Part shown: positions 7,045 through 55,343 of the stretch, piece by piece
How positions within the stretch are numbered: position 1 is the stretch's first letter
How the letters are laid out: each line of letters opens with the position of its first letter
NCBI RefSeq assembly: GCF_000143415.4
Contig: NW_003314334.1
Location: 741,891-805,890 of the forward strand
DNA from: Selaginella moellendorffii
Taxonomy: Eukaryota; Plantae; Lycopodiophyta
Direction of reading: 5' to 3'
Length of the DNA stretch: 64,000 nt
Notes under the pieces: generated by a model
Told to the model about the DNA's origin: nothing
The model's input: the letters and a program-made list of their open reading frames with translations, nothing else
The model's database searches: none
Translations under genes and position numbers: made by a program

Positions 7045-7901
7045 TTAATTGGAAACATTTGCTACTCTCCCACTGTTTCTTTTGTTCATCAGAACTCGTC
7101 CTAACATTTCCCCCACTAACACCACAACAACAATAGAGTCCATGACACACACCATCCTATTTCCCCACCTCCAGTCTGGATATAAATGTTTACACACAAA
7201 AGTGATAGGTATGCAACTTGGCACACAAAGAGAACCTATAGGATATGTACCAATTACTTCACATATAACATTGTCATCTTCCCTCAGACAGTCGGCAAAT
7301 CCATGATTTGGAAAAAGCCATCTTTTCCAACTAATAAAACAGGGTGTTTCCATGAACCATCTCATTACAGCTGATGTTCCTGCACAAGAATGTGCTATTG
7401 CAGACAAAACTTGCCAAATAATAAACCAGGAGCGATTAGAGACATATGTGCTGGCTAATGCACTAGCTGCTCCAATAAAAATACTAACCAGCATAGAGCA
7501 CCTGTAGTGGAAGAGAGTAACGATTCCAATAATAACTGTAAAATCAGTTTAGCAATAGCATTTTATACAACTGTTCTAATATTACCTCCAATAATATAGC
7601 CTACTGATAGAAATATATATACATGACGAGTGAAGCAAACAAGTTGCCAATATCTTATGGCAGAGTATTTTGGCCCAATTTTTGCATAGGCCACGTAATA
7701 TGATGTAAAACCCCAATGGTAGCTAGGGCTTAGTGCATTGCAGTCTCTTTGACAATAAAGAACACCATTTGGGCAATTCCACTTTGGAGGATAAAATGTG
7801 ATATAGATGGTGAAAACATAAAAACTAATTGCCCAAGTCATAATAATTGAAACAGGTAAGAAGAACCACCACAATGGAACACTCGTACTAGTAATCTCCA
7901 T
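7045..7901 (-). CDS. OCT/SLC22-like half-MFS membrane protein, 268 aa (exons 7901-7586, 7535-7045)
   Basis: Open spliced frame across a 50-nt GT-AG intron. TM1-PPKWNC...C..C...W-SAIRYWQLVC-TM2 loop pattern of plant OCTs, about 6 TM segments, stop after TM6. Confidence 0.72.
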
Positions 7902-7959
7902 ACCCAACCTATCAAGCCCTAATATGTAATCCTATAAATAACAAGAAAAGGATGTGGAT

Positions 7960-8730
7960 GATGAGGCTGAGAGCTATTCGCTTTGATCATGGATTCACCT
8001 CGAGTTTATTGTGTTCCATCAGGCACTTGTCAGTACGAGGTCAATGGTGTTGGAATCAATGTGAGCGAGCCAGGTACTGCTTTGTACTTCCTCAAAGAGT
8101 AAAGGCATAAACGTTTTGGCTTCTTTCTGCAGTCACACATACAACACGGATTTTCCGAAGCGGTTGGTCTCCAAGATGTGATGATACTTGAAAGAGAACT
8201 TTGCTTTCCTGTACGTAGAGATTGTGGAGGCTTTGTTAGAGGTGGTGAGCCATCTTTGCAGGTCACTGGTTGACACTACCAGGAAATGCTAGAGGATGGA
8301 TGCATCCTCCAGTCACCATTTGATGGATGTTAGTGCAGGTAAAAGAATTATTGCTAGAAACTCTTATAACTTTCTTGTGTCTTTGTTGATAATTCAGACA
8401 CTGGACATCTGCATTTGCTGGATACGATTGCTTTGAGAATTACTTGCGAGTGGAGACATGTTAGTTGTTCTCTTATTCTTGTTTGTCTTGCTAGCTCTCA
8501 GCTCAGACTTGCCTAAGAGCATTGGCATACATGGAGCTCAAGCATTTCGTCCTACAGTCTTGGCATCAAAGGCTCGTCCATGGGGCTTGTCAAGTCTTTG
8601 ATGTTTTTCTGCGCGGTTGGACACCTAATAGTGCAGAAAGCTTCATTGTACTTCGGAATTGCTCGCAGCCGTGGCATTGAAGACACCTCGTCTAGCCAGC
8701 TTTCAATCACTTGCATAGACAAAAAAACTA
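7960..8730 (+). pseudogene. Unidentified multi-exon gene relic, convergent with the 481-aa membrane gene family
   Basis: Homologous segments with conserved GT-AG boundaries at 37289-38015 (+), 32500-33200 (-) and 44215-44725 (-). No intact frame; family not recognised. Confidence 0.45.
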
Positions 8731-8780
8731 GAGTGCATTTAGCAAGAAAAAAACATACAAGAAGAGCTGCTTTCTATCTT

Positions 8781-10225
8781 CTATTTCTTGCGAAAGAAGG
8801 CAACGAAGAAAGCTACATTTGCAAACCCAGTTGTAACGGCTCCCGTGAGATGGGCGTAGTCCGTCTCCCAATGGGAGAAAATTCCCCACAGCAAAGCTGA
8901 CACAAGAGAAAACAGTGAGAACCCGAAGTACAGAAATGACCGTGGGAAACCAAGCCGAAGAACTCCACGCAGGCCAAGAGGAAAGGCTGATGCTACGACG
9001 TAGATTCCCGCTGTGACCCAGATGCGTGGCGGCTGGTGCTGAAACGCGAGCGAAAACCCAGGAGACGCAAGACTGAGCACCATCGAAGAACACAGTATCG
9101 CGACTCCTCGTCCCCGTCCAGCAGGCAGCTTGGCAATCACCGTAAGCAGCCCAAACACACAGAAGAAACCTGAGAATGCAGCGACGAAGGCCGACATGAT
9201 AGCCAAGTGGTGGTAGTCTATGCGATCCCTGTTCCACTTCTCCACCATAGCAACCGCGTTGAGGGTGGAAAGTGCCAGGAGAGCCAAGAGAGGGGACAAC
9301 GACCTCAGCATATCGTCACCTGAAGATCCTCGAGCTTGAGCATCACCTGCCTGGGCATTGCCGCCAGTAGCAGCAAGTAGCACAGCACCAGCTCCCGCAA
9401 GTGGCACAGCAGCAGCCACACCAGGGTCTCCCTCATGAGCCATCACACCAGCATCTCCCTCAGCAGGTGTGTCTCCCATGGACACGCTATCTCCTCCCTG
9501 AGCCGTCTCAACAATCTTGTCTCCCGTGGCACATCTCCCTCCGTCACAATGATCCCCGTGAAATCTTCACCTGGATGGACATCTCCTTCACCCTCGCACT
9601 CGTCCTGTGCACCAGTGTCTCGCTCACCTGCAGCAGCGTTTCCCTCAGTTGGACCAGCAGCAGCGTCTTGCTCCGGCATATCCACAACGATGTTGGTAGC
9701 GTCTCCCTCCGGCATGGCAGCGGCGGCTCCCTCCAGCACATTTGCAACACCAGCGTCTTCCTCCGGCATGCCACCGGCGTCTCCCTCCAGCACATTTGCA
9801 ACGCCAGCGTCTCCCACATCCACAAAGATCCTAGTCGCCTCTTGGCCACCAATTTGAGCCGCGCCATCGCCCAGAACACCACCGCGCGCTGGATCCACGC
9901 CCAGAACACCACCGCGCGCTGGATCCACTCCATGGCAAAACGCTGCTAGCGCTATCGAAGCCACTAGAGAAGACAGCATTGACAAAAATCCTAGCCAGAA
10001 GATTCGTGATTTGGTGATCTCCTCGGCAGGAATCGCGTCTGTAGGAACCTTGTGTGCCTGATGCTGGAACGGATCCAAGAATGCTGGCACTGGCGGTGTG
10101 GGGAAGTATATCTTGCTCCAGAGGATCCAGACCACGAGCCCAAATGCAATCACGCCCACAGCTCCAAGCCGACCGCGTCTTGCTCCCCGCAGCTCCAGAC
10201 CGCGTCTTGCTCCTCGCAGCTCCAT
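8781..10225 (-). pseudogene. Frameshifted copy of the 481-aa orphan membrane protein
   Basis: Near-identical to 38077-39522 but lacks one G at ~9528 (cccgtggcac vs cccgtgggcac), which splits it into 260-aa and 234-aa ORFs. Confidence 0.8.
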
Positions 10226-10329
10226 TAGGTCTTGGAGAATGGCACAAGATCTTCGCGTTTAAGAACACACACCCTCATATGTCCTAGAACCGACCAAGAT
10301 CTCAAAAAAGAATAAGAGCGTCCTTCTTT

Positions 10330-11235
10330 GATATCTTGGAGTGGCTTCGTAGAAAAGAATGTAGCTTTTTGCTCAGGCTTTCACAAATCCAGTGGCTTTC
10401 TCCGGCCTCCAGCCTCCATTCTGTGCACATCTATGAAGCTTGTGGAAAATGTGACAATACCTCTAGTTGCGCTGAAACAGTCCCTGCGAGCTCCCGACTG
10501 AACAGATTGTCACGAATCTGTACAAGGAATTGTCATGACACGCCTACCTGAATGATCGCAATCGCACCAGAAGTTCTGGAACGCAGCAAGCTCTCTTCTA
10601 TTGCAGGAAATGATCTAAGAAGAAGAACAAGATGCAAGAACAGTGCTGGGATTAAATAAGCACAAACTTTGAGGCAGCAGACTGACCAGATCTCGAGAAC
10701 CTTAAAAGAAAGCCTGATAGTCCTCAGGCAGAAGTACAGTTTCGTAAGTCTACTACTTCTTTAAGCTCTGAAAGATGTCCAGAAAGTAGTGACGTTAGTG
10801 ACCAAGAACGACAAGGAAATCAACAGCAGTATTTCATTATCAACGATATACCTGTGTTTGTCAAGAGAGCACGCAACTGTATCCGAATCTGGTAGACCTG
10901 CTCGAGAAGTAAAGTCCATTTAGTGCACAGAATGTCCTGTCTGTAAGTTCCACTCTCTCTGTATCTTCAGCTTTCAATTAACGGATGTTTTGAGTTCACG
11001 AGACTTCTCAAAGAAACTAGAAAAGCATCACATTACCAAATAGCCGTAACGGACGTAGCATGGCATTCCTGAGGAAAACCATCTCACTGAGGTTAGATTG
11101 ATTTAGACAAACAAAGATACTATGTACCTGTCGTTCTGCCGTGCTCCATCATATGCACGTAAAGATCCGCACCAGCTAGATTAGAGGCATAAGGACGAGG
11201 AGCTCCATGAGTATTTCCGCGGTACTTTCCTGCAG
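10330..11235 (-). pseudogene. NUP107: Second, diverged partial NUP107 C-terminal relic in tandem
   Basis: LMPLI/YASNLAGADLYVHMME repeats the exon at 12420-12520 (HKEELVG..YVDMMELR). 10500-10600 resembles 11360-11540. Confidence 0.65.
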
Positions 11236-11339
11236 GAATGTGGAAAAAGCGCATTCAGCCTCATTAGCGCCTGGACCAAACTATGTAGATCATGAAACAA
11301 CACTTACACCAAATTGCTTCCCAAACCTGAAATACATCC

Positions 11340-14300
11340 TGAGAAACATACCTCTAGCTGACTGCCGCTAAACAGTCCCTGAAGAGCTCCCGACGCAACC
11401 AGTCAGGATTATCACTTGCTGTCATTTCAAGACCGGAAGCCAGCCACGAATCTGAAACGAAGCTCCAGAGCAAGAAATTGCAATTTAAACCTGACGCACC
11501 TCCATGCATCGTAGCACAAGTTCTGGAAAGCAGCAACGACGGCAAATAAATCACGAATGGAGCATCCCGGCGTACACCATCCGAGTGAATAGAAAACGCA
11601 TCCATTCGAAAAACTTCAGGATGAAAATGTGGAAGTTCTCCTGCAACAAAAGGAAAAAGAGAAGAAATTAATCCTGATGTCCAGGGCGAAAAGTAAACCT
11701 TCAATGACAAAAATCCACCATCACTTGTTACAAGTGATTCAATGCCTTCCCCTTCAAGAGCCGCACATTTGAGCTCTATATCCAGTAACATATTGTTCTG
11801 AGGATTGACAGCCACATTCACCTGTTTCACTCAAGTCGTAAGGTTACAAAAAACGCCAGATAGAAGTTCTCTTTACCGTTAAGTTGCGTTGAATGGAAGC
11901 CAACTCTCCCGAGCAAAAATGCAATGCGCTGTTCGGAGCAGTGCAAACTGTAGGATCTGGAGCAAATCAAGGATCCGATGATCTCCATAAAACGACAGTG
12001 GAAAATAGTTCCACGGATTGGAAGGCCTCATCGTTGGTGAGAAGCCACTTTCATTCGCTACCTGAAAACGAAAATGTGAAAACAAAATAGGAAGAAGCAA
12101 AATAAGATAGCTTACTGTGAAGAAAAGCAGTAGCTGTGTCAAGAGCTTGTTTTGCAGTAGCAAAGGACCTTGCTCTTTCTTCAGGTGAAATGCAGTTCTC
12201 AATTGTTGATAGCCAGCTTCGATAATGTGCGTCACAAGAAACGTATTCTTGCTGAAAAAACGAAGTCCCGGGAAAAAAAAAACAAAAAAAAAAAAACAGG
12301 CAGCAACGTTCTTTTTTTTAATGGCTCTGCTTTTTCCTTCCGAAATCTCAACACTGCACCATAGCGGCGTTAGCGAGATCTCTCGGAAAACCAAACGCTG
12401 TTGGAATTCTGCCATACAACGGGAGGCTGCCGCAGCTCCATCATATCCACGTAAAGATCTGAGAGGGATGAGGGCCAACGAGCTCTTCCTTGTGTTGCGT
12501 GAATACAAACCTCACGTACCTAAAAGAATAACATAAACAATAAGTGGAAGTGAAATCGATCATACGTGCTCAGGATTCAATCTCCAGCCAATTCAAGCCT
12601 GTCCCCGTATTGTCCTTCAATCCTTCCGCAGAACCAGATGTGCGGCGAAACGAATCATTTGAGGATGCCTGTGTGGCCCTGAGAGAAACTCAGCTTAACG
12701 CACAATGATCAAAGCCTACGTACTTGACGTTAGAACTGTCGTCTACATTTCCAGTACCGCTGCCATATCAGAGACCACGAGGTGCATCTGTCCAACACAA
12801 CAGCTGCGTCTCACAACCAGATTCCCAAGTCATGATGAGACAAAATGTGTACCCAGAGTAGAGCTTTTGAAACAAGTTGATAAAATCACAAGGCAACAGG
12901 CTCGGCACAAGTGGAAGATAAATCGATCGCGCTTAAAAGATGGCGGTGAGAAAGCTCTCCATGACCTTACAAGAGCGAACACGTTGGCTTTTTTTCAGAT
13001 TAGAATCACAGCACAATACCTCGCAGTTGGCGTCAACACACGTGGTTTACATTGCAGCAAAAACGGGACTCTCGTATCTCCCCCCCTTCACTTGACGCTA
13101 TTTTCTGGAACACCTTGTTTGGAAACTCAAACACAAGTTCAAGCCCATACCTCGGAAGCACAAAAGCAAGCCCATTTCCGTATCCTCCCTCCATCAAGCC
13201 CTGTAGCGTCTAAAGGAATGAGCAGTCATGCAGCCAGCTCTCCACGCCTGATAGTGCAAGATAGCTGTGTCATTAATTCAAGAAAATAAGAAACTGGTTT
13301 TTGCTCGAGAATCACCAGGAGCTTGGATTTGAGCAGCGCGAGTGCTTTATCTTGTTTTGAAGTTGGCTTCTCTACTCTAGTATCACAAGAAAAACAAAGA
13401 AAGTTTTAGAACACTGCTTGCTGAAGAAATTCTAGAAACATTTGTTTCATGTACCTGAGCAACGAAGAGTAATCCCTGTTGGACACAGGTCCTGCACTTC
13501 TGCGTTTCTTCCAGCTCGGATGAGATTCCGCACATCTCTAAAAGATTATGTTCCAGTTTCTGCGACAAATACGATACACGTAAGAAGACCCGTAAGAGCG
13601 TAGTACCTGATCTTCGGGATGCAACCTGGAGTTGGAGCATCAAGATCCAAATGTCGAACATAGTGAGTTCCGATATTTTTTTTGATAGCCCGTGTTATCG
13701 CACGAGCCTAGCTTCTGAGGGTATAGGCCCGCCTTCCTGTAGCGATAACATTTGTAGACACGAATATACTCCATGCAAGAGTTTTACCTTTTTTTCTAAA
13801 TCCAATTCCTTGGACGCCAAACTCTCGAGACAAGACAAAGACAAGTCTGATCGTTTCCTGTAAACCCGGACTGCGCTTTCAAAAAACAATAAAGTCAGTC
13901 CCACTGAAACGTAATAAGCGATGCTACCTTTTCCATACAAATGCCAATGAAAAACCCATGATGAAGACTCGGAAGTTTGCAATTGAGCCTTCTGACGTAG
14001 CCCTGTCTTTTACAGCTCGATGGCTGCCTCGTCTCTGTAAAGAAAAAGCCGCTAAACTTCCAGTCGTCCTCAACAAATCGTTTCATTTCCGCTAGATCCC
14101 GGCCAAACTCGCTCAAGAGCTCGGGCAGAGACGTGATGCCTGTCAAAGAAAAACATAAGCCGAGTTGTATGGCTTGAGAAACAAAAGTGGTAAACCGGGT
14201 AGCCACGTACCCACGCCAGAAGCAAAGCGCTCAAATGAATCTTATCTGGTTCCTAGAGACCAGATACGGGTGAAAAGAGAGAACTTAGCACCAAAAACCA

Positions 14301-14580
14301 AAACCACACCTCTTTGATTCGTGGAGCAGCAAATGGGGACTCTTGGGCTCTTCAGAAAAGCTAGGAATCTTTGGCTCGGGACGCATTTCACCAGCATTCT
14401 CACAGGAAGAAGAGAGAACGAGAAAAACATACCTGTATCGCCGGCAATGCCACCAAAAACCCTCTTTACAAGTAAAAATCTCATGGTTTTGAGCGTCTGG
14501 TTAGTTAAGCCAGTAAGAGCGCGTCTGGTTAGGCTAACAAGAGCTGTTAGCGGCCGGATCGGAATGTCCACCTCCAACTT
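11340..14580 (-). pseudogene. NUP107: NUP107 near-full-length degenerate copy
   Basis: N-half as at 4100-5610, then ESPVFAA, DFINLFQKLYSG, HPQMIRFAAHLVLR, YVRFVFTQHKEELVG, YVDMMELR and GELPHFHPEVFRMDAF. Many deletions. Confidence 0.85.
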
Positions 14581-14924
14581 TACGATCCACTGCCGTTCAA
14601 ACGCACTTCCACAAATCAAATAATTAATAAGTTCCGCTATTTTACTGTTATTTTCCAAAATACGTTTGAAGGGCAACAATAAATAATTTATATAATCAAA
14701 CAGGGCAAAACATCTTTTCTGGGCTTATAAGCTAAATCAAACTTTTTTCTTGGGATTGGAACTCGGAGCAAGATGCTTGCTATTAAAATTACTTTAGAAG
14801 CTCTTGTCTATACACTTATCTACATGTAAGCAGCTATAAAATTACAATTAACTGGAATTGTCACTAGAAATAATCAAGTTTATAAATCTACGCATAAATT
14901 ATAAATCTATAATATCAAATTTTC

Positions 14925-15125
14925 ATAGCTTAGACTGTTTTATTATTTGTATAGAAATTACTAATGTGTTTTTCCAATTATTATTGGAGTTATTAACTGT
15001 ATGCTGGTTAGTAGAATAGTTAGTACATTAGCAAGCTTATACATCTCAAATCACTCATGGTTTATCGGATATCCTATGATTTCTTTATTCAAGCTAGGTT
15101 GCATATTTTGGATGCCACAATGGCA
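14925..15125 (+). pseudogene. Collapsed relic of OCT-like half-transporter exon 2
   Basis: Deleted version of 48590-49015. Confidence 0.6.
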
Positions 15126-15245: not shown

Positions 15246-15838
15246 AATCCGAAGGAAAGCTCCAGCTACTTGCGAGCATGGGATGGGGAGATGTGAGCGT
15301 GAGAACGGTGAGGAAGGACTGCACAGAGATAAAGACAGTAATATATCCTCCGTACTCTTTCCCTCTGTTCCCACGTCCATAGTGGATGCAGTTTTAAAAG
15401 CATCTTTATACAAAGTTCACATGAATTTCCCCTAAACATCGAAGTTTGCCCTGAAGAACTTAGCTTCCAGGAAATATGGAGTCAAGATTTATTTATTTTT
15501 TCTTCCTTGTTTTTCTTGAGGACCGAGCTAATGATATTTTGAAAAACTCGATCAGTTTTTGTTCCTCATTCGTTTGCTTTTCTTCATGCAGACGTTCCAA
15601 AGTTCTCACAATCGATCTTCAACACTAACCCATGGTAAATGTCGATGTTAAAGGGAAATTCAGCTTTAGGTAGCTGTTTGTGAACTTGAACACGTATGGA
15701 CAGGGGAACAGAGGGAAAGAGTACGGAGGATATATTACTGTCTTTCTCATCTTATCTCCCTGCAGTCCTTCCTCCCCGCTCTCAGGCTCACATCTCCCCA
15801 TCTCATGCTCGGCGAGTAGCTGGAGCTTTCCTTCGGAT
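15246..15838. repeat. LTR-derived inverted repeat (arms ~15246-15381 and ~15695-15838)
   Basis: gaaggaaagctccagctact...atatatcctccgtactctttccctctgttcc is the reverse complement of 15703-15835. Confidence 0.9.
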
Positions 15839-20130: not shown

Positions 20131-20653
20131 CACAACATTGCAGATCAACTTCAAGCAAGTGATGAGGTTGATCACTTACAAGTTTTCCGTCAGTTTACTT
20201 TGGATATTCTCCTACTCTAAATCTCCAGCGCCATGGATGCTTGCATCGCGACTGGGAATCCCGCGGTATTCAGCAAATCCTCACGTCCCGCTCTACTCTC
20301 GGTGAGCTGGCATTCTTCTGATTGAGCAATATTTCTCCACAGAGGCTGTGAATTTCTGGATGGCGAATTCAGCTGTGTGGGACGACGATGCCGTGCCAGC
20401 TGCTCACGATATCGCCAGGTTTTGGTGTGCGGGATCCTCGTCTTTGATTTCACTCAGAAGATTTTCCTTGCTTCCAAGCCGGAGCATTGTTTCTACAAGA
20501 ATCTATTCAATGACAGCAGCTGAAAGACACTGTCCGGTGAGTGTTTCCACGTTCTCTTGACATCGATTTTGCTTCAATCGTTGTGGAAGTAAGTTCCATC
20601 GAATACCCCTGGTAAAGGGATTCTTGTGCTTAAATTCCTTTCTTTTTGCATAG

Positions 20654-20965
20654 GATCTATTAGGGCTTGAAAGGTTGGGTATGGAAATTACTAGTAAGAG
20701 CGTTCCATTGTGGTGGTTCTTCTTATCTGTTTCAATAATTATGACTTGGGCCATTACTTTCTATGTTTTCACCATTTACATCACTTTTTATCCTCCAAAG
20801 TGGCACTGCCCAAGTGTATTGTCAAAGAGACTGCAATGCACTAAACCTTGGCTACCATTGGGGTTTTACGTCAGATTACTTGGCTTATGTAACAATTGGG
20901 CCAAAGTACTCTGCGATTTGATATTGGCAGCTTGTTTGCTTCACTCACCACATATATACTTTTTT
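20654..20965 (+). pseudogene. Truncated OCT-like half-transporter (paralog of 54411-55343)
   Basis: MEITSKSVPLWWFFL... is frameshifted at ~20815. A deletion joins ~20965 to sequence equivalent to ~55379. Confidence 0.85.
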
Positions 20966-21039
20966 GGTTGATGCAAAGATTTGCAGTACTGTCAGAGTGC
21001 GAGGGGGCCATGGGGAAAATCCTTGCCACTTCTTCGAGT

Positions 21040-22390: not shown

Positions 22391-22439
22391 GGATTACAGC
22401 TAGGCATTAGAAATTTACAAAGGCTTCAATGAAAAGAAT

Positions 22440-23025
22440 ACAATAAATTCCTTTTAGCATATGCCCTGCTTGGCATATCCTCTGGTCCAATACTCATCCT
22501 CAGTGCATCAATGAGCGAGATTATGGATACAACATATGTTACTAACACTTGGTTTTTAACCAAAGCTGCTGAATTAAAAAATTACTAGAGCATCAGAACA
22601 TTTTTGTATATCAAATATGGAATTATATACTCTTCCATTATTAACTATAACCATTCCCACCGGATCAAGGGTAAAAAGTAAATATACCTGATATGAAACA
22701 TATGGTATAGATTCGTCTCCAGTGCATTCCTGTATCCCTATCCACCACCTCATAATTTGATGATGTCTCTGCATATGCATGTGCTACTTGTAAAGCAATG
22801 AATGTAAAACATATGTGAGCTCCTCCAATAGCAAAGCTAACTAGCATAGACAACTGAAACAAACTGTTAAGCAATTATCCATAAATAAATCTAGCTTACC
22901 TCCAGCCACATAGCCCAGTGATAGCAAAGTATATAGATACGGAGTGAAGCAAGGAAGTTGTGCAGAATAATTTAGCCCAAACTTCCCAGTTCGAATGTAG
23001 CATGCATAGAAACCCCAGTGGTATT
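22440..23025 (-). pseudogene. Diverged OCT-like half-transporter paralog relic
   Basis: HWGFYACYIRTGKFGLNYSA-QLPCFTPYLYTLLSLGYVAG|gtaag (same intron position), MLVSFAIGGA...AHAYAETS..MRWW. Confidence 0.7.
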
Positions 23026-23477
23026 TAGGTGCCTCTTTAAAGGGCTATAATTTAAATACACTAGTGTTTGGTTTTCTTTCATCTTAGAACAAATAGCTTT
23101 TCAGAAAAGATCTCGGAGACAGTGAAGGCTGTTTTCGTTCTCGAATCCATATAGCTAGAAACGCAATAGCGACCACAAATCTTTTAGTGATATTTAAGCA
23201 CGAACTTTTTGTAATGGTCGGCAAGCAGCTCGCGCGCAGACTGCACACATCGCCTCTCAAATTATGTATATATCCTTTTTCCAATCTAGCTTTATTTGTG
23301 GAGATCTTGGCCGTTTTCGATCTAGTAGCTACGTCTTGGAGCAGCTCAAGAGCCGGGAGCTTGAGCTGCACAGGAAGTGTTCCTGCCATTTTTCCTTCCA
23401 TTCCTTTGAGTTTTGTTATACCATAAGGAAGGGAGCTGAAGCTCTAAAGGTGAGGCTTTCGCTTCTCCTTTTTTCTG

Positions 23478-25880: not shown

Positions 25881-25884
25881 AAAG

Positions 25885-29922: not shown

Positions 29923-30779
29923 ATGGAGATTACTAGTAGGAGCATTCCATTGTGGTGGTTCTTCTTACCTGTTTCAATTATCATGACCTGGGCAATTAGT
30001 TTCTATGTCTTCACCATCTATATCACATTTTATCCTCCAAAGTGGAATTGCCCAAGTGGTGTTCTTTATTGTCAAAGAGACTGCAATGCACTAAACCCTG
30101 GCTACCATTGGGGTGTTACATCACATTACATGGCCTATGTGAAAATTGGGCCAAAATACTCTGCCATCCGATATTGGCAGCTTGTTTGCTTCACTCATCA
30201 TGTATATACGTTTTTATCAGTGGGCTATATTACTGGAGGTAATATTAGAACAGCTGTATAAAATATTATTGCTAAACTGATTTTACAGTTATTGTTGGAA
30301 TCGTTACTCTCTTCCACTACAGGTTCTTTATGCTAGTTAGTATTTTTATTGGAGCAGCTAGTGCATTAGCTAGCACATATGTCTCAAATCGCTCCTGGTT
30401 TATCATTTGGCAAGTTTTATCTGCAACAGCACATTCTTGTGCAGGAACATCAGCCGTAATGAGATGGTTCATGGAATCACCTTATTTTATTGGTTGGAAA
30501 AGATGGCTTTTTCCAAATCATGGGTTTGCCGACTGCCAGGGGGGAGATTACAACCTTATAGGTGAAGTAATTAGTGAATATCCTATATGGTCTATTTGTG
30601 TGCCAGGTTGCATACCTATCACTTTTGTATGTAAACATCTATATCCAGACTGGAGGTGGGGAAACAGGATGGTGTGTGTCATGGACTCTATTGTTGTTGT
30701 GGTGTTAATGGGAGAAATGTTAGGACGAGTTTTGATGAACAAAAGAAACAGTGGGAGAGTAGCAAATGTTTCCAATTAA
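29923..30779 (+). CDS. OCT/SLC22-like half-MFS membrane protein, 268 aa (exons 29923-30238, 30289-30779)
   Basis: Intact spliced frame, same 50-nt intron and same stop as its paralogs. Confidence 0.72.
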
Positions 30780-30940: not shown

Positions 30941-30977
<37 letters not shown>

Positions 30978-38015: not shown

Positions 38016-38076
38016 CAAAAAAACTAGAGTGCATTTAGCAAGAAAAAAACATACAAGAAGAGCTGCTTTCTATCTT

Positions 38077-39522: not shown

Positions 39523-39629
39523 TAGGTCTTGGAGAATGGCACAAGATCTTCGCGTTTAAGAACACACACCCTCATATGTCCTAGAACCGACCAAGATCTC
39601 AAAAAAGAATAAGAGCGTCCTTCTTTGAT

Positions 39630-40530: not shown

Positions 40531-40669
40531 CAGGAATGTGGAAAAAGCGCATTCAGCCTCATTAGCGCCTGGACCAAACTATGTAGATCATGAAACAACA
40601 CTTACACCAAATTGCCCCCCAAACCTGAAATACATCCTGAGATACATCCTGTGTGCAAAATGCGATAAA

Positions 40670-43600: not shown

Positions 43601-43880
43601 CACCAAAAACCGAAACCACACCTCTTTGATTCGTGGAGCAGCAAATGGGGACTCTTGGGCTCTTCAGGAAAGCTAGGAATCTTTGGCTCGGGACGCATTT
43701 CACCAGCATTCTCACAGGAAGAAGAGAGAACGAGAAAAACATACCTGTATCGCCGGCAATGCCACCAAAAACCCTCTTTACAAGTAAAAATCTCATGGTT
43801 TTGAGCGTCTGGTTAGTTAAGCCAGTAAGAGCGCGTCTGGTTAGGCTAACAAGAGCTGTTAGCGGCCGGATCGGAATGTC
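40670..43880 (-). pseudogene. NUP107: NUP107 near-full-length degenerate copy (duplicate of 11340-14580)
   Basis: Same ORF set as 11354-14679; retains RRIWKWACFCASE. Confidence 0.85.
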
Positions 43881-44056
43881 CACGATCCACCGGCTGGTGC
43901 CGGTTCAAACGCAAAATCTCACTTACAGAAGGCTCTTCAAATAACTTAATACTTATTCAATGTTTCACTATTTTACTGTTATTTTCCAAAAACCCAGAAA
44001 ATATACTTGACCTGTTTGATAATATTATTGTTTTAGATTGCCCTTCAAACGTATTC

Positions 44057-44214: not shown

Positions 44215-44725
44215 CGCTTGTCAAGTCTTTGATGTTTTTCTGGCTCCATGTATGCCAATGCTCTTAGGCAAGTCCGAGCTGAGAGCTAGCAAGACAAACA
44301 AGAATAAGAGAACAATTAACTTGTCTCCACTCGCAAGTAAATTTCAAAGCAATTGATCCAGCAAATATGGATGTCCGGTGTCTGGATTATCAACAAAGAC
44401 ACAAGAAAGTTATAAGAGTTTCTAGCAATAATTCTTTTACCTGCACTAACATCTATCAAATGGTGACTGGAGGATGCATCCATCCTCTAGCATTTCCTGG
44501 TAGCGTCAACCAGTGACCTGCAAAGATGGCTCACCACCTCTAACGTTTATGCCTTTACTCTTTGAGGAAGTACAAAGCAGTACCTGGCTCGCTCACATTG
44601 ATTCCAACACCATTGACTTCTTTTACCTCGTACTGACAAGTGCCTCATGGAACACAATAAGCTCGAGGTGAATCCATGAGACTGTCCGAGTGTAACTTTC
44701 GGTTCAAAGCGAATAGCTCTCAGCC
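44215..44725 (-). pseudogene. Inverted copy of the unidentified relic
   Basis: Reverse complement of 7965-8540 with an internal deletion. Confidence 0.5.
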
Positions 44726-44782
44726 TCATCATCCACATCCTTTTCTTGTTATTTATAGGATTACATATTAGGGCTTGATAGT

Positions 44783-45639
44783 ATGGAGATTACTAGTACG
44801 AGTGTTCCATTGTGGTGGTTCTTCTTACCTGTTTCAATTATTATGACTTGGGCAATTAGTTTTTATGTTTTCACCATCTATATCACATTTTATCCTCCAA
44901 AGTGGAATTGCCCAAATGGTGTTCTTTATTGTCAAAGAGACTGCAATGCACTAAGCCCTAGCTACCATTGGGGCTTTACATCATATTACGTGGCCTATGC
45001 AAAAATTGGGCCAAAATACTCTGCCATAAGATATTGGCAACTTGTTTGCTTCACTCGTCATGTATATATATTTCTATCAGTAGGCTATATTATTGGAGGT
45101 AATATTAGAACAGTTGTATAAAATACTATTGCTAAACTGATTTTACAGTTATTATTGGAATCGTTACTCTCTTCCACTACAGGTGCTCTATGCTGGTTAG
45201 TATTTTTATTGGAGCAGCTAGTGCATTAGCCAGCACATATGTCTCAAATCGCTCCTGGTTTATTATTTGGCAAGTTTTGTCTGCAATAGCACATTCTTGT
45301 GCAGGAACATCAGCTGTAATGAGATGGTTCATGGAAACACCCTGTTTTATTAGTTGGAAAAGATGGCTTTTTCCAAATCATGGATTTGCCGACTGTCAGA
45401 GGGAAGATGACAACGTTATATGTGAAGTAATTGGTACATATCCTATAGGTTCTCTTTGTGTGCCAAGTTGCATACCTATCACTTTTGTGTGTAGACATTT
45501 ATATCCAGACTGGAGGTGGGGAAATAGGATGGTGTGTGTCATGGACTCTATTGTTGTTGTGGTGTTAGTGGGGGAAATGTTAGGACGAGTTTTGATGAAC
45601 AAAAGAAACAGTGGGAGAGTAGCAAATGTTTCCAATTAA
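44783..45639 (+). CDS. OCT/SLC22-like half-MFS membrane protein, 268 aa (exons 44783-45098, 45149-45639)
   Basis: Intact spliced frame; inverted near-identical duplicate of 7045-7901. Confidence 0.72.
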
Positions 45640-45791
45640 GTGTGTAATATTAAAGTGATCAAGAGAACTTTGGGATGGTTGAAACTAGAATTCATGTGCT
45701 GCCACAGATAATGCGAGTATTCAGAGAGTGTGGGTTTTTTAATATATAGCAGCATAGACTTCTGTGGTGACATTACGACTTTGCCAGTCAT

Positions 45792-45833
<42 letters not shown>

Positions 45834-45839
45834 TACCTC

Positions 45840-46200
45840 GGAATATCAACTTAGACTGTTTCATTATGCTAATGCGTTTTTCCAATTATTATTAGAGTTA
45901 TTATTACTCTCTTACACTGTTTGCTGGTTAGTATTTTTATTGGAGTACATTAGCAAGCATATATGTCTCAAATATGGTTTATCATTTTGTCTGCAACAGC
46001 ACATTCTTGTGAAGGAAGATCAGCCATAATGAGGTTGTTCATAGAAGCACCTTGTTTTCTTTTCCAAATCATAGGTTTGCAGGTGCCCAGGGGATGATCA
46101 CAACAATATATGTGAAGTGATTGGTGGATATGCTATGGTTTCTTTATGCGAGCCAGGTTGCATACCTTGTGTAGACGTCTAGGATGGTCTGCGTTGTGTG
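45840..46200 (+). pseudogene. Degenerate exon-2 relic of the OCT-like family
   Basis: Inverted duplicate of 6420-6795. Confidence 0.7.
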
Positions 46201-46439
46201 GTGTTAATGAACAAAAGATATATTGCAATCCACAATGTTCCCGATCCTCTTCTTTAATTCACACTTACTGTTGAAGTGTCGCTTTGAGGATCCAAAAACA
46301 CAGAATTTTGGTCCTGAACAAGCGAATCGATTTGCTTTCTGAAGGTAAACTTAAGAAAGTGCCGACTGAAGAACGCACCGCTTATAGGTCCCTCAAAAGA
46401 AAAAGAGAAAAAAGGCATTTGAAACACATAAAATCTTAC

Positions 46440-46672
46440 GGCTGTGGAAGCTTGACAGGGCACAGGGCATTCAGCATGCTGTGCAGCATAGTCACTCACG
46501 CTTCCCAGGAACGTCCTGTCCAAATCCACGGTTTGAGGAATGCAAACTAGAGCTTTTTGGCGAACCTTTTCACCATTCCAATGCCTCGGCTTCCCAGTAT
46601 TAACATTGTTGGAGGCCACTCGTTGACAGCTTCTAGCAGCTTTTCTTGGGCATCCCCTTTCTTGGATACAAT
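46440..46672 (-). pseudogene. USP C-terminal exons (duplicate)
   Basis: TFLGSVSDYAAQHAECPV; inverted paralog of 5667-5998. Confidence 0.85.
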
Positions 46673-46724
46673 CAGTTTTGTAGAAAAAGAAATCATGAGC
46701 TAGTCAAAAGTTTATCACAAAGTA

Positions 46725-48235
46725 CCTTAACGGGACTCACTCGACGCTATTTTCTGGAACACCTTGTTTGGAAACACAAACACAAGTTCAAGTCCATACC
46801 TCGGAAGCACAAAAGCAAGCCCACTTCCATATCCTCCTTCCTCCATCAAGCTCTGTAGCGTCTAAAGCGCGCTCGTTGAATGAGCAGTCATGCAGCCAGC
46901 TCTCCACGCCTGATAATGAAAGATAGCTGTGTCATTAATTCAAGAAAATAAGCAACTGGGTTTTGCTCGGGAATCACCAGGAGCTTGGATTTGAGCAGTG
47001 CGAGTGCTTTATCTTGTTTTGAAGTTGGCTTCTCTCCTCTAGTATCACAAGAAAAACGAAAAAAGTTTTAGAACACTGCTTGCTTAAGATGTCTAGAAAC
47101 ATTTGTTTCATGTAGCTGAGCAACGAAGAGCAATCCCTGTTGGACACAGGTCCTGCGCCTCTGCGTTTCTTCCAGCTCGGATGAGATTCCGCACATCTCT
47201 CAAAGATTATGTTCCAGTTTCTGCGATAAATACGATACACGTAAGAAGAGGACCCCGTAAGAGCGTAGTACCTGATCTTCGGGATGCAACCTGGAGTTGG
47301 AGCATCAGGATCCAAATGTCGAACATAGTGAGTTCCGATATTTTTTTGATAGCCCGTGTTATCCCACGAGCCTAGCTTCTGAGTGTATAGGCCCGCCTTC
47401 CTGTAGCGATAACATTTGTAAACACGAATATACTCCATGCAAGAGTTTTACCTTCTTTTCTAAATTCAATTCCTTTAGACGCCAGACTCTCGAGACAAGA
47501 CAAAGACAAGTGTAAACCCGGACTGCGCTTTCAAAAAACAATAAAGTCAGTCCCGTTGAAACGTAATAAGCGATGCTACCTTTTCCATACAAATGCCAAT
47601 GAAGAACCCATGGTGAAGACTCGGAAGTTTGCAATTGAGCCTTCTGATGGAGCCCTGTCTTTTACAGCTCGATGCTTCTCAGCTGCCTCGTCTCCGTAAA
47701 GAAAAAGCCGCTCAACTTCCAGTCGTCCTCAACAAATCGTTTCACCTGACTGCCTCCGCTAGATCCCGGCCAAACTCGCTCAAGGGCTTGGGCAGAGACG
47801 TGAAGCCTGTCAAAGAAAAACGTAAGTTGAGTTGTATAGCTTGAGAAACAAAAGTGGTAAACCGGGTTACACCAGAAGCAAAGCGCTCAAATGAATCTTA
47901 TCTGGTTCCTAGAGACCAGATACGGGTGAAAAGAGAGAACTTAGCACCAAAAACCAAAACCACACCTCTTTGATTCGTGGAGCAGCAAATGGGGACTCTT
48001 GGGCTCTTCAGGAAAGCTAGGAATCTTTGGCTCGGGACGCATTTCACCAGCATTCTCACAGGAAGAAGAGAGAACGAGAAAAACATACCTGTATCGCCGG
48101 CAATGCCACCAAAAACCCTCTTTACAAGTAAAAATCTCATGGTTTTGAGCGTCTGGTTAGTTAAGCCAGTAAGAGCGCGTCTGGTTAGGCTAACAAGAGC
48201 TGTTAGCGGCCGGATCGGAATGTCCACCTCCAACT
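46725..48235 (-). pseudogene. NUP107: NUP107 N-half relic fused to USP exons
   Basis: Inverted paralog of 4100-5610; WDNTGYQKNIGTHYVRHLDPDAPT. Confidence 0.85.
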
Positions 48236-48589
48236 TTACGATCCACTGCCGTTCAAACGCACTTCCACAAATCAAATAATTAATAAGTTCCGCTATTTTA
48301 CTGTTATTTTCCAAAATACGTTTGAAGGGCAACAATAAATAATTTATATAATCAAACAGGGCAAAACCACTTTTCTGGGCTTATAAGCTAAATCAAACTT
48401 TTTTCTTGGGATTGGAACTCGGAGCAAGATGCTTGCTATTAGAATTACTTTAGAAGCTCTTGTCTATACACTTATCTACATGTAAGCAGCTATAAAATTA
48501 CAATTAACTGGAATTGTCACTAGAAATAATCAAGTTTATAAATCTACGCATAAATTATAAATCTATAATATCAATTTTTCATAACTTAG

Positions 48590-49015
48590 ACTGTTTTATT
48601 ATTTGTATAGAAATTACTAATGTGTTTTCCAATTATTATTGGAGTTATTAACTCTAGGTGCTGTATGCTGGTTAGTAGAATAGTTAGTACATTAGCAAGC
48701 ATATACATCTCAAATCACTCATGGTTTATCATTTTGTTTACAACAGCACATTCTTGTGAAGGAAGATCATCTATAATGAGGTGGTTCATAAAAGCACTTT
48801 GTTTTCTTGGCTACCAACGATGGCTTTTTCCAAATCATGGGTTTTCAGGCGACAATATATATGTATAAGGTGATTGGTGGGCGTTCTCGCGCAGCACAGC
48901 CTGATCGGAGAGGCGCAAGAGATTTACGAGAGCATGCCCGAGTGTGATCTCATGGATATCCTATGATTTCTTTATGCAAGCTAGGTTGCATATTTTTTGT
49001 AGACGATGCCACAAT
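48590..49015 (+). pseudogene. OCT-like exon-2 relic containing a short PPR-derived insertion
   Basis: MLVSRIVSTLASIYISNHSWFIILFTTAHSCEGRSSIMRWFIKALCFLGYQRWLFPNHGF. Confidence 0.75.
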
Positions 49016-49499
49016 AGCCATATGGACGTGGGAACAGAGGGGGAGAGTACGGAGGATATATTACTGTCTTTATCTCTCTGCAGTCCTTCCTCACCGTTCT
49101 CACGCTCACATCTCCCCATCCCATGCTCGCGAGTAGCTCGGATTCTTGCAAACTAAGCCAAGTATGTTGAGTTAAATAGACATTTATTCCTTCTTTATGC
49201 TTGTGCAGTAAAATACAGATGTGAAGTCTAATTTAGTAACACTTAACAAAAAACAATATCAAAGTTGATCTTTTGCGATGCAGTTTTAAAAGCATCTTTT
49301 TTTTTTCTTCCTTGTTTTTCTTGAGGACCGAGCTAATAGTGTTTTGAAAACCTCGATCAGTTTTTGTTCCTCATTCGTTTGCTTTCCTTCATGCAGACGT
49401 TCCAAAGTTCTCACAATCGATCTTCAACACAAACCCATGGTAAATGTCGATGTTAAAGGGAAATCCATCTTTAGGTAGCTGTTTGTGAACTTGAACACG

Positions 49500-52400
49500 T
49501 ATGGACAGGGGAACAGAGGGAAAGAGTACGGAGGATATATTACTATCTTTCTCATCTTATCTCTCTGCAGTCCTTTCCTCACCGCTCTCACGCTCACATA
49601 TCCCCATCTCATGCTCGGCGAGTAGCTGGAGCTTTCCCTCGGATCTCTTTTCCCTATCCCTTGCTCGATAACAGTGGTATCGTAGCCACTTCGTCTGGGA
49701 CACACGCTCGAGCGTCGTGAAGGAGACCAGTCGTTGGAGGTCGGCTATCAGGTAAAGCGGCCGGAATGTTTCGTTTCGCTTTCACAGTTTTTGGTGACCG
49801 ATCTTCTCTGGACTGGTCGTGGATAAAGGGAGGGAGGGGATTTGTTCTTCCTGGGCAATGGCGGCACCATAGAGGCGGCCGAAGGCGGCGATTTCAGGGG
49901 ATTTACCAAGGTTTAGTCTTGATGTTTTCGCAGCACAAGAGAAGATGATAAGGTGCCTATCCGATCGGCAGGAAGATCTAGACGACAGCTTGCGGGTCTT
50001 AGGAGCTGCAGTGACCAGGCCGATGGGGGACTCCGGAAAGAGGAGGGAGTTAGGCGCCGACCTTTCGAGTTCCAAGTACCACCATTCAGCGGGAGCACGG
50101 TAGGGGAGTAAGCCTTCGCTTTTGGGACAACAGCTTCAGAGTTTCCTATGGGAGCAGTTCTCCAACAGGTCGACGGTCAGCGAGCCGATACAAAGTATCG
50201 TTTAGCACCCATGCAGACTCAGGGATTCTTCACAGCGGCGCCAGCTTTCAGCGGGATAAGGGCCGGTTCAAGAGCGGGAGTTTCCGTGTAATGGTCCTTT
50301 CCGGAGAGGCAGAGTGGGCAGGACAACGTGGGGCGGGTGGGGGAATCCATTCCAATCCACGAGAACTAGTAGGGAGTCTGGACCCTCTCGGGCTGGGTGG
50401 AGTGCGTGGGACTCATGGCTGCGCAAGTTGAAGAGGTGGTTTCTATACCGTGGTCATCGCGATTCGCACAAGGTAGCCGGCTCTCCACTTGAAAGCCTGG
50501 CCTCCGAGTCCCTTCTCTCTCGAGACTGTAAAACCAGGCTTCCAAGTTGGGAGGAGTTCAAGCAAAGGATTCGGGAGCATTTTATCATCACGTCCGTGGG
50601 AGAGCTTCCCTTCAACAAACTCTGCGGAATGGTGTACAGATTTAAGTCCCAGACGCCCAGGAATTCAACGAGACGTGGCTTAAGGCGAGATACGAGGTGA
50701 CCAACATCCCGGAGGATGCTTTGATGCAACGTTATGGCAACCGAAATAGCTCAGCTATCTCCTCGCTCGGTCCAGCAAGCGATGGGATTAGCATTAAACA
50801 CGGATCTCAAGTTCCACGAGTGGGAAGCTCGTCTTTCCGGCCGATGGAGGCAAGGGCCACCAAAGGAGACAACGAGGGCCGGAGCCACCCAGAGTGGTAT
50901 GCCAACTCCCGATCAGCGGAAGCAATGCAAGTAAAGGGAAGCGATGACCTCAAGCTTGGGAAATGTTCATTGGGAAGTTTGCAAGGCTCCGTGCACTTGG
51001 GAGAATGCAAAAGACAAGGATATCTTAGTCCTGTAGACGGATGTACCACATTGGCCTCAGAAGCAGCGAGAAGAGGCGGACGCGGGGCTTGAGGGAGAAC
51101 TTTCTGTGGCGAAGGCATGCATCTCCTATCCGGCCTTTATGGGAAAAGCTGCGGGTACTTGTTTCGGAGTCAAAGGAACGATTAGCAGGAAGCATTCGCA
51201 TTAATTGACTCGTGAGTGCCACCGTCAACCAACATTCTCTATCTAAGCTGCAGCTCGCAGCGCGTCCACAGAAGACTCCTCTAGAGGTGGAGATAGCGGA
51301 CGAGGGAGTCATCGAGGCGTCTGCCCGGGTCTCATGCTCGATGCTCATTGGTGGTCACCAAGTGAAAGGAGAGTTCTTCATCCTGGGCATCAAAACACTT
51401 CGCCTCTTTTGGGGACATTCTCGTCAACTTTGATGAGCATCGTCTCTCCTTCAATCACCAGGGGAGGAAGATCGTCTGGAGGGGGGAGTGGACATTGGAA
51501 AGAAGACACGGGCAACCGCTGGACAATGCCGGGGGTTGATCGCGAGAGGAGGATGTCCCATGGCGTATGATTCAGAAACAGGGATTCTTCTTCCAATGGA
51601 TGGGAACCCGAAGAGATCCTTTCGAAACGACATCTTCAGCTTTCTCAGGCCTAGCTGCAAGGTCCAACCATGTACCAAGTTCCGACTTCTCCAGTCACAG
51701 GGGAGGGGAACCAGAGAGAACCAGGTCGTTGGAGGAAGCAGTACACCACGGAAGCCATTCGTGAGGTGGCAAGGAAGTATTCAAGGGTCTTCCTCAACCG
51801 AGTTTGTGCTCATGAAGCAATCACGCACAAGATCCAACTCGAGAAAGGGATCGTCACGACTGTTCATTCAGCTGAGCCATGTAGAGCGAGGTGGATAAGA
51901 TGATCAAGGAGCTCATGGACAATCTCTTAAAGAGGACAGTTTCAGTCCTTACACGGCACCAATAATCTTGGTGCTAAAACGTGACGGCTCGTGGAGACTG
52001 TGCGTTGATTACAGACAGCTCAACAACGTCACTCCCCATCCCAACTTAATTGATGGACTCGGTGAAGCAGCTATTTCTCCGAGCTAGATTTGCGATCTGC
52101 ATATTATAAAATATCCATGGCAGAGAAGGACAGGATGAAGACAGCATTTCAGACTCACAGAGGGGTTTTACCAGTTTAAGGTGAGGGCTCACCATCCTTT
52201 TCAGTCTCTCATGAACAAGATCGGTCATTGTATTTTTCGACGACATCCTCGTCTACAGTCGATCCTGGGAAGAACACCTTACACACATCGACGAGGTTTT
52301 GCAAGTGCTAGAGGATCATGCGCTGATCGTCAAACTCTCAAAATGCTGCTTTGCCAAGCAAGAAGAGAAGTACTTAGGCTTCCGGATAACAAAAATGGAG

Positions 52401-53960
52401 GCGATGAGTGGTCTCTCACCACCATGAAGTAGCTCCATGTATTTCTCAGGCTCTGCAACTACCTCTGGAAGTCTGTGGAGCACTATGCTTCCGTTGCGTC
52501 GCCTCTGACGGACATCATTCGTGCAGGCAGGTTTTCGTGGGACGAGAATGCACGGTACGTTCGAACTTTTCGGCTCCGATTCTTCAACTTTCAGACTTTG
52601 AGAAGCAGTTCATCGTGGAGACGATGCCTCGGATGCAGGAGTGGGAGCGATCTTGAAGTTCGAGAGCAAAAGGTTCTTGGAAGCGGAGTCTCGCCAGCCG
52701 GCGTATGATTGACAAAGTGGAGGCACTGCGAGGTCGCACGGATCACTTCAGTATGAAATTTCTTCTCGAGCAGCCTCGCCTTAACAAAAAGCAGAGGCAG
52801 CTTCAATCACTCGATTTCACGATTGAGTATAAGCCAGGGAAAACAAACGTCGTCCCTGATGCGCTCTCAAGGATGTTTGAAAAGCCGGAGGTCAGTTGTC
52901 ACACCAGAAATCATAAAGGGCTAATCCAACGATGACCAGACAACAACTTCAACGACGCGAAGATTTCCTTCCATGACGGCTTGCTCTAGAAGAAAGGAAG
53001 GATTCTGCAAGATCATCTTCACCAAGGCATTCTCGCGGGGCATCCGGGGGTCGTGTGGAAAGGAATGGAGTGTGAGATACGCACTTGGATCAGGGAGTGT
53101 CCAGAGATAGTCGCAACACCTTGTCTTCTCAAGCATTTACCTTCTCCATCAGCGCAGCTCTCGTCCTCAGCTTCAAAGAAGGTGGTAGAGATCTTCTGGA
53201 GGGAGGTGGTGAGGTTCCATGGCGTTCCAAGCGAAATCGTCTCCAACCGAGACACCAGGTTTCTCAGCCAGTTTTGAAAAGACCTTTTCACAACGTTACT
53301 GAGCTTCAGCACCGCCTACCATCCCCAGACAGATGGTCAGACGGGACGGACGATTGGAGACATTGGGGATACGTGCGGACCAGCTGGGCACACTCGCGGA
53401 GTTTGCCTACAACACTGCTCGGCACTCAACCATCGGTATGTCTCCATACCAGTAGCTTCCCCGATCTTGATGACAACTCCCACTTCATCAAACGACGTCA
53501 GTGACCAAGTGGAAGCCATCAGGAAGATGCAGCAGCTGATTGGGCAACGGTTGGAATCTCCTCGTGTAGTCACAGCTCCATCCCAGATTCTTCGGCACAC
53601 TCAGGATACTCGAAAAGATCAACGAGCTCGCCTATAAGTTGGCATTACCACCGGGGTCGCACCTACATAACGTTTTCGACGTGTCGGATCTCAAGCTTTT
53701 GCGGACCAGCTCCCGGAGTTTTTTCCTGCGCCGGAGTTTGTCTCCTCCGACAGGCAGCCTATGCTGCAACCGAAAGCACACTGGGAGATACAAGGTCAGG
53801 TGGCACGGAACGGATGACGAACAGGAACGGACCAGAGCTCCTCGAAACAGACCTGTTAGGACGTACTATAACGCATGAGAGTACGGAGGATTTATTACCA
53901 TCTTCCTCGTCTCATCTCTTCTTTCACATCTTACCTTCTCTCCCCACATCCATCAGTTTA
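49500..53960 (+). mobile_element. Degenerate Ty3/gypsy chromovirus (duplicate of 15695-20130)
   Basis: PBS at 49675-49687; gag-PR-RT-RH-INT (STAYHPQTDGQT at ~53307)-chromodomain; 3' LTR start TGTTAG at 53854. Confidence 0.92.
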
Positions 53961-54410
53961 AGGAATTTAAGCACTGTCGGGATGATGGATGTCGAGTTTT
54001 GGCCTGGCACCTGGGTTAAAAATTTACTCGCTCTCGCGATCATCTTGATGATAGACTATGGAGTTATCAGAAGAACTTTATCAACACTCGAGATACACTA
54101 AAAAGCCTTGCCATATACAACATTGCAGATCAACTTCAAGCAAGTGATGAGGTTGATCACTTACAAGTTTTCCGTCAGTTTACTTTGGATATTCCCCTAC
54201 TCTAAATCTCCAGCGCCCAGCTGCTCACGATATCGCCAGGTTTTGGTGTGCGGGATCCTCGTCTTTGATTTCACTCAGCCGGAGCATTGTTTCTACAAGA
54301 ATCTATTCAATGACAGCAGCTGAAAGACACTGTCCGGTGAGTGTTTCCACGTTCTCTTGACATCGATTTTGCTTCAATTGTTGTGGAAGTAAGTTCCATC
54401 GAATTAGCAG

Positions 54411-55343
54411 ATGCATGGTTTACCCCTGGTAAAGGGATTCTTGTGCTTAAATTCCTTTCTTTTCCATAGGATCTATTAGGGCTTCAAAGGTTGGGTATGG
54501 AAATTACTAGTAAGAGCGTTCCATTGTGGTGGTTCTTCTTACCTGTTTCAATAATTATGACTTGGGCCATTACTTTCTATGTTTTCACCATTTACATCAC
54601 TTTTTATCCTCCAAAGTGGCACTGCCCAAGTGGTGTTCTCTATTGTCGAAGAGACTGCAATCCACTAAACCTTGGCTACCATTGGGGTTTTACGTCAGAT
54701 TACTTGGCTTATGTAACAATTGGGCCAAAGTACTCTGCGATTCGATATTGGCAGCTTGTTTGCTTCACTCATCACATATATACATTTTTATCAGTGGGCT
54801 ATATTATTGGAGGTAAGACAGTCTCATAAATATTATTTCTAAGATGTTTTTACAGCTATTATTGGAATCGTTACTCTCTTTCACTCCAGGTGCTGTATGC
54901 TGGTTAGTATTTTTATTGGAGCAGCGAGTGCATTAGCAAGCACATATGTCTCAAATCGCTCCTGGTTTATCATTTGGCAAGTTTTGTCTGCAATAGCACA
55001 TTCCTGTGCAGGAACATCAGCCATAATGAGATGGTTCATAGAAACACCCCGTTTTCTTGGCTCGAAAAGATGGCTTTTTCCAAATCATGGATTTGGTGAC
55101 CGCCAAGGGCAAGATCATTACCACATATATGAGGTGATTGGTGGATATCCTATACTTTCTTTATGTGAGCCATGTTGCATACCTATAATTTATGTCTGTA
55201 AACGTCTATATCCAGACTGGAGGTGGGGAAACAGGATGGTGTGCGTCATGGACTCTATTGTTGTTGTGGTGTTAATGGGGGAAATGGTAGCACGGGCTAT
55301 GAAAAAAAGACACAGTGGAAGAGTAGCAAATGTTTCCGATTAA
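54411..55343 (+). CDS. OCT/SLC22-like half-MFS membrane protein (exons 54411-54428?, 54470-54812, 54856-55343; 267 aa from ATG 54497, 282 aa with the micro-exon)
   Basis: Intact spliced frame with 41- and 43-nt GT-AG introns. Most divergent intact paralog. Confidence 0.7.

Follow-up and report, generated by a model that had tools for sequence, protein, structure and literature searches.

The window analysed here, a stretch of 64,000 nucleotides (nt) from Selaginella moellendorffii (contig NW_003314334.1, positions 741,891 to 805,890), carries four intact copies, A to D, of a two-exon gene whose predicted product ends after six hydrophobic segments. On balance we think that these copies are selected Selaginella paralogues of half-size major facilitator superfamily (MFS) proteins, derived from the organic cation transporter (OCT) family and perhaps oligomeric. 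The sequence-only reading of this DNA had proposed a lineage-restricted family maintained by selection, which ends after six helices and has no C-terminal domain (C-domain), and that proposal held.

Four intact genes and selection on their reading frames

As shown in Table 1, the four copies share one gene structure. Exon 1 is 316 nt long in all of them and exon 2, including the stop, is 491 nt in A, B and C and 488 nt in D. The intron is of the GT..AG type, with 50 nt in A, B and C and 43 nt in D, and splits the same codon after its first base (phase 1) in every copy; the splice sites are unbroken in all four. The predicted products of 268 amino acids (aa) for A, B and C and 267 aa for D end at a common stop, 18 residues past the sixth hydrophobic segment. 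Four open copies with one intron position and one stop had been described before, and this was borne out. The coordinates given for A, B and C were also right; for D the start had been placed at an ATG at 54411 that is off-frame and closed by a stop, and the true start is at 54497.

Likeness between the copies begins 35-60 bp 5' of the ATG. It ends about 200 bp past the stop in B and exactly at the stop codon in D, which argues that no C-domain is concealed nearby, and beyond the stop no sequence is common to all four copies. A downstream C-domain was ruled out: on the 3' side of A and C there is nothing but a tandem exon-2 copy that has decayed, with 68% identity and with stops. A (GA)n microsatellite lies about 150-200 bp past the stops of A, B and C (6787-6880, 30960-31010 and 45785-45839), within their common 3' flank.

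The ratio of nonsynonymous to synonymous substitution rates (dN/dS) was calculated by the Nei-Gojobori method on the whole codons of each exon, leaving out the split codon, with bootstrap intervals and Fisher tests. It was 0.27-0.33 in five of the six copy pairs (bootstrap confidence intervals below 0.6; Fisher p 8e-5 to 6e-9) and 0.13 in the very recent A-C pair. As a neutral reference, 31.8 kb of duplicated non-genic blocks in the window contain 0.27 gap openings per mismatch; over 187 bp, the 3' flank shared by A and B shows 16% mismatches with 10 gap openings. The synonymous divergence between A and B (dS = 0.18) is on par with the mismatch level of that non-coding flank. At the neutral gap rate, the 60-95 mismatches that separate the 804-nt frames would be accompanied by 16-25 indels per pair; zero frameshifts were found, and only a single in-frame deletion of 3 nt, in D. 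We are quite confident that the four loci are real protein-coding paralogues under purifying selection. The segment after the fourth transmembrane segment (TM4) is the most variable part of the protein, as had been noted, but the diversifying selection suggested for it did not appear: its dN/dS, from small counts, is 0.24-0.96 and never exceeds 1.

Hydropathy analysis gave six hydrophobic segments followed by a basic C-terminal tail. TM1 and TM2 are joined by a loop of 52 residues with four invariant Cys, and the motif YSAIRYWxLxC ahead of TM2 is invariant across subfamilies. Across the subfamilies, at about 35% identity, TM4 also keeps Gln, His and Cys and TM6 keeps Asp and Glu, and the presence of such buried polar residues suggests a binding site or a helix-helix contact. 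From MFS topology and the positive-inside rule we infer that the outer side carries the four-Cys loop and the cytosolic side the variable Cys/His insert. This placement argues against a receptor-like surface, and the receptor-like role once considered for the protein loses ground.

Relatives and descent

A word search with exon 2 among 5.8 billion proteins found no match. A HMMER profile search of 1.84 billion representative proteins gave five matches, two of them genuine and both from S. moellendorffii; P0001, P0004 and P0005 were discarded as spurious, being repetitive proteins. When the matches of a further word search are added, all relatives come from S. moellendorffii, namely two 253-aa RefSeq proteins, XP_024519092.1 and XP_024525003.1 ('uncharacterized protein LOC112342084' and 'LOC112344448'), and older models of 416 and 430 aa. 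Note that the exons of the window were searched separately, unspliced, and that the full-length tests used a 253-aa relative. In tblastn searches the 253-aa family matched the window copies at E 2e-35 to 7e-36.

The window copies belong to the LOC112342084-like orphan family, as they are colinear with it over the full length, have their intron at the same position and in the same phase, and share its C-terminal end. The two RefSeq proteins and the window copies are colinear from Met to stop and have two exons, with the phase 1 intron after the G-x-x-x-G of TM2; they also share the four loop Cys, YSAIRYWxLxC, the TM4 Gln, His and Cys, the TM6 Asp and Glu and the basic tail. They are, however, only 39-44% identical in exon 1 and 30-33% in exon 2, and an acidic stretch occupies the place where the window copies have the KRWLFPNHGF...Cys/His insert. 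The gene of a 253-aa member is a single copy among ordinary genes, whereas the window copies form a cluster with relics. The RefSeq 253-aa model ends at the same place as the window copies, with a pentatricopeptide repeat (PPR) gene 215 bp further on, and the 416- and 430-aa models (EFJ09277, SELMODRAFT_425052) are mis-fusions of two genes. At locus L002 a complete two-exon half-size gene begins 135 bp past a separate homologue of a 481-aa open reading frame (ORF) of the window, which encodes an orphan membrane protein. As far as the sequence searches reach, the orphan family is known so far only from S. moellendorffii, and we found no description of it in the literature on half-size MFS proteins.

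Descent was examined with family models, structures and language-model features. For each of the 253-aa proteins TIGR00898, the OCT family, was the top NCBIfam match (E 7e-4 and 6e-3), aligning residues 57/59-166 with model positions 92/94-210, and the sugar-porter model came second (1.6e-3). Against the PDB, the family profile found OCT2 (8et9_A) first, at E 0.0048, with family positions 87-143 on OCT2 151-209 over TM2-TM4; PDB searches with single-exon alignments returned only noise. Language-model features of exon 2 pointed to Sugar_tr/MFS_1 (0.94, 172 shared features), and the same search with exon 1 gave no usable match. The best, non-significant, hhalign path to an Escherichia coli sugar-porter profile lies on the same TM2-TM4 stretch. 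These alignments are concordant: FHYR of the family pairs with motif A, Gln with the TM4 Arg and E-x-P with the E-x-x-P that follows TM4. In the OCT2 alignment, motif A (ADRFGRK) stands opposite A-LFHYR, with the Asp gone and one basic residue left, and the position of the TM4 Arg is taken by Gln (LQVL or WQVL versus FRLI), which bears out the earlier statement that both had been lost.

SLC22 proteins have as a hallmark a long loop with Cys and, after it and directly ahead of TM2, S-x-I-x-x-W-x-L-x-C. The family has both, and resembles the SLC22/OCT proteins (TC 2.A.1.19; TIGR00898; 8et9) in being colinear with them over the loop end and TM2-TM4, in its long Cys-containing TM1-TM2 loop with W-x-L-x-C ahead of TM2, and in having them as top match in two libraries. 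It differs from them in its half length, without TM7-12 or the C-domain, and in its degenerate motif A and TM4 Arg, and it scores 15-20 bits where the OCT cut-off is 550; in place of the 12 TM segments in one chain that are usual in the MFS it has six and a conserved stop. The OCT/SLC22-like identity proposed in the sequence-only reading thus stands in part: OCT comes top in NCBIfam and in the PDB, though weakly, and the curated cut-off and Pfam do not support it. We consider descent from the N-domain of an OCT-like MFS protein probable on these alignments.

Possible function and competing explanations

What each copy encodes is most probably what remains of an SLC22/OCT-like MFS carrier: its N-terminal six-helix bundle, diverged to an extreme degree. 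The ancestor would have lost its C-terminal bundle along with motif A and the TM4 arginine, and the copies would have spread by segmental duplication in a transposon- and pseudogene-rich mosaic in which copies are born and die. A single MFS bundle cannot by itself build a central cavity, yet the polar residues of TM4 and TM6 are kept, and an oligomer of bundles is therefore favoured: a homo- or hetero-oligomer that would bind or pass a small cation. We infer this oligomeric-carrier mechanism tentatively, with less than even confidence, and favour it over an accessory subunit. Its more specific form, a natural 'semi-MFS' in which 6+6 homo- or heterodimers act on small cations as a functional carrier or channel, possibly with the adjoining orphan membrane protein, is rather doubtful. 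Expression may be restricted to conditions outside those sampled.

A number of results weigh against the half-MFS reading. Pfam gave no MFS family, even at E<=1-5, for the exon translations of A and B or for the 253-aa relatives, and the Sugar_tr and MFS_1 matches that the sequence-only reading had named as a check failed to appear. The TIGR00898 scores of 18.5 and 15.4 bits do not reach the curated cut-off of 550.75, and hhalign comparisons of the family with E. coli XylE, GalP and a six-member sugar-porter/MHS profile were not significant (E 0.39, 0.11 and 0.069). AlphaFold2 models were unusable, with a predicted local distance difference test (pLDDT) score of 37.2 for exon 2 and 41.6 for the 253-aa relative with the family alignment; these values were too low for a fold search, as low-confidence models give meaningless matches. 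A homodimer prediction for the 253-aa relative (score 0.09, mark 0.32) gave no verdict and is evidence neither way. Among A, B and C the short intron is no less conserved than the exons, and some of the likeness may thus come from gene conversion. Expression was assessed in three paired RNA-seq runs of one study, with the same species label and 1.38 Gb from each. In none of them did a read match 44655-46193, which contains copy C, at a likeness of at least 90%, while the adjoining sequence was covered 15-90x. Copies A and B had no reads either; reads of A (99% like C) and most reads of B (92-93%) would register. The assessment thus covered A, B and C; D is 88% like C. Silence in all tissues cannot follow from one study. 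With a weak homology signal, failed folds and no transcript for the window copies, the value of the finding is limited for now.

Could this six-helix protein, equally under selection, serve as a membrane subunit with an accessory or regulatory role instead of as a carrier? Its partner would be a full-length MFS protein, through dominant-negative or chaperone action, or the orphan membrane protein encoded alongside. Motif A and the TM4 Arg drive the conformational switch of MFS carriers, and their degeneration in the OCT2 alignment fits such a role, as does the homologue of the 481-aa ORF that lies directly 5' on the same strand both in the window (10225-8781, then 7901-7045) and at L002, at 35-40% identity in both genes. 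That adjacency may simply reflect duplication of both genes as one block, however; copies B, C and D are without the upstream partner, and the conserved TM6 Asp/Glu and TM4 Gln/His/Cys are at least equally in keeping with a binding site, so that we regard the accessory subunit as somewhat unlikely. We think it unlikely that the family is an unrelated orphan six-helix protein whose OCT and MFS matches are chance likenesses between hydrophobic helices. The lack of any Pfam match, the non-significant hhalign results, the failure of exon 1 in the language-model search, the unusable folds and the absence of any MFS protein at E<=1e-3 from the exon-2 profile search of the 1.84 billion proteins are what such a protein would give. 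Nevertheless, OCT came first in two independent libraries (E 7e-4 and 5e-3), all alignments are colinear over TM2-TM4 with the same residue pairings at motif A, the TM4 Arg and E-x-x-P, and the Cys loop with S-x-I-x-x-W-x-L-x-C is an SLC22 hallmark.

The two remaining explanations question the genes themselves. Functionless fragments, pseudogenes or transposon cargo, open by chance, would agree with three RNA-seq runs without reads and with surroundings full of retrotransposon and PPR relics, including seven relics of the family in the window. A dN/dS of about 0.3 with p down to 6e-9, the absence of frameshifts where neutrality predicts 16-25 indels, intact splice sites in four of four copies and an architecture kept in relatives of 30-44% identity, including a single-copy one that sits among ordinary genes, make this very unlikely. 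Finally, a longer gene for 12 TM segments might begin with the two exons of each copy and have its C-domain exons further off, which would be compatible with the lack of transcript evidence for the window copies and with the Joint Genome Institute (JGI) models EFJ09277 and SELMODRAFT_425052, which are multi-gene fusions and make annotation here unreliable. Yet nothing past the stop is common to the four copies, the likeness of D ends at its stop codon, the in-frame stop is kept in all copies and in distant relatives, and the RefSeq 253-aa model ends alike with a PPR gene 215 bp later; we hold a longer gene to be extremely improbable.

MFS carriers are thought to stem from duplication and fusion of a six-helix unit, and hardly any eukaryotic six-helix members that stand alone under selection are known. 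Bibi and Kaback are said to have found in 1990 that split LacY halves reassemble. Semi-SWEETs are parallel homodimers of 3-TM units (PMC8154325). Both systems are a precedent for half a two-bundle carrier working once paired, but SemiSWEET has a different fold and split LacY is artificial, with both unlike halves present, whereas the Selaginella family has only the N-half, whose assembly is hypothetical. TCDB places the six-TM families 9.B.143 (DUF1275) and 9.B.111 (LysS membrane domain) in the MFS superfamily (PMC8154325). These resemble the Selaginella family as single six-helix units tied to a normally 12-helix superfamily; however, no sequence likeness to it was seen, and they are neither OCT-like nor from plants. 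A family that is without second bundle, motif A and TM4 Arg and yet constrained (dN/dS about 0.3) would offer a test of whether a single bundle can dimerise into a functional carrier and of whether a non-transport role was taken on. The present analysis also corrects the annotation, which lacks the window loci and fuses genes wrongly in two public models of relatives.

Relics, neighbours and setting of the window

Seven relic loci of the family were found in the window by tblastn at E<1e-3 (Table 1), where at least eight had been counted before.

Table 1. Intact copies and relics of the six-helix gene family in the window
Feature	Position	Strand	Remarks
Copy A exon 1	7586..7901	-	Met, TM1, four-Cys 52-residue loop, TM2 start
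Copy A intron	7536..7585	-	50 nt, GT..AG, phase 1
Copy A exon 2	7045..7535	-	TM2 remainder to TM6, 18-residue basic tail
Copy B exon 1	29923..30238	+
Copy B intron	30239-30288	+
Copy B exon 2	30289..30779	+
Copy C exon 1	44783..45098	+	protein identical to copy A exon 1
Copy C intron	45099-45148	+
Copy C exon 2	45149..45639	+	without RNA reads
Copy D exon 1	54497..54812	+	true start
Copy D intron	54813-54855	+	43 nt
Copy D exon 2	54856..55343	+	one codon shorter; likeness to other copies stops at stop codon
Relic of exon 2	6399..6741	-	stops and deletions; tandem, 3' of copy A
Relic of exon 2	45900..46179	+	tandem, 3' of copy C; counterpart of 6399-6741
Relic exon-2 fragment, divergent subfamily	3555..3707	-	61% identity to copy A exon 2 (tblastn)
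Relic exon-2 fragment, same divergent subfamily as 3555-3707	48635..48850	+
Exon-1 relic, frameshifted	20681..20966	+	paralogous counterpart of copy D; remaining gene deleted
Exon-1 relic	22895..23032	-	48% identical
Relic: exon-1 end and exon-2 start	57165..57512	-	with stop

The assembly gap at 19573-19672 falls within the integrase region of a gypsy-type retrotransposon that has decayed, and the sequence on either side of the gap is colinear with the paralogous block 51671-53908. It is crossed by neither copies nor relics, the nearest relic beginning at 20681, and a second gap at 60909-61348 is likewise free of copies and relics.

Almost every neighbour had been described as frameshifted. 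Exceptions are the 481-aa ORF at 38077-39522, which is intact, and a spliced minus-strand gene at 46.2-48.2 kb with RNA reads. The ORF, on the minus strand, encodes an orphan membrane protein with a Gly/Ala/Asp-rich middle and a multi-helix C-terminus, for which neither Pfam nor a word search found a relative outside Selaginella. A frameshifted copy lies at 8781-10225 (minus strand), directly 5' of copy A on the same strand, and a relic at 31946-32362 (plus strand), 3' of copy B. The homologue in L002 (5001-5783) is 35% identical and lies 135 bp 5' of the half-MFS gene on the same strand. The 481-aa-type gene and the half-MFS gene may have been conserved together as a pair.

Large segmental duplications with 87-95% identity, some of them inverted, make the window a mosaic (7987-14660 versus 37334-43991; 15492-26191 versus 49297-60908); by them the family and its neighbours were multiplied. 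Three paralogous pol relics of gypsy-type long terminal repeat (LTR) retrotransposons, at 17524-19700, 26649-28273 (minus strand) and 51671-53276, carry protease, reverse transcriptase and integrase motifs and are broken by stops; the first includes the gap at 19573-19672, and a related piece occurs in L002 at 10748-11542. Frameshifted PPR gene arrays are also duplicated, at 21000-26200 and 55300-60600, and keep remnants of E, E+ and DYW motifs (Pfam PPR, E_motif, Eplus_motif, DYW_deaminase).

The spliced gene at 46194-48245 (minus strand) has introns of 50-105 nt (CT..AC on the plus strand), RNA reads at 15-90x and ORFs without a Pfam match. Paralogous blocks of it lie at 3710-5815, 13062-14965 and 42382-43991. 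Many of its reads show fixed differences, which indicates that most stem from paralogues elsewhere. A 33-nt island at 44591-44623 is covered by 160-200 RNA reads per run, which on both of its sides continue into unrelated sequence; it is an exon fragment, the exon being expressed from another locus.

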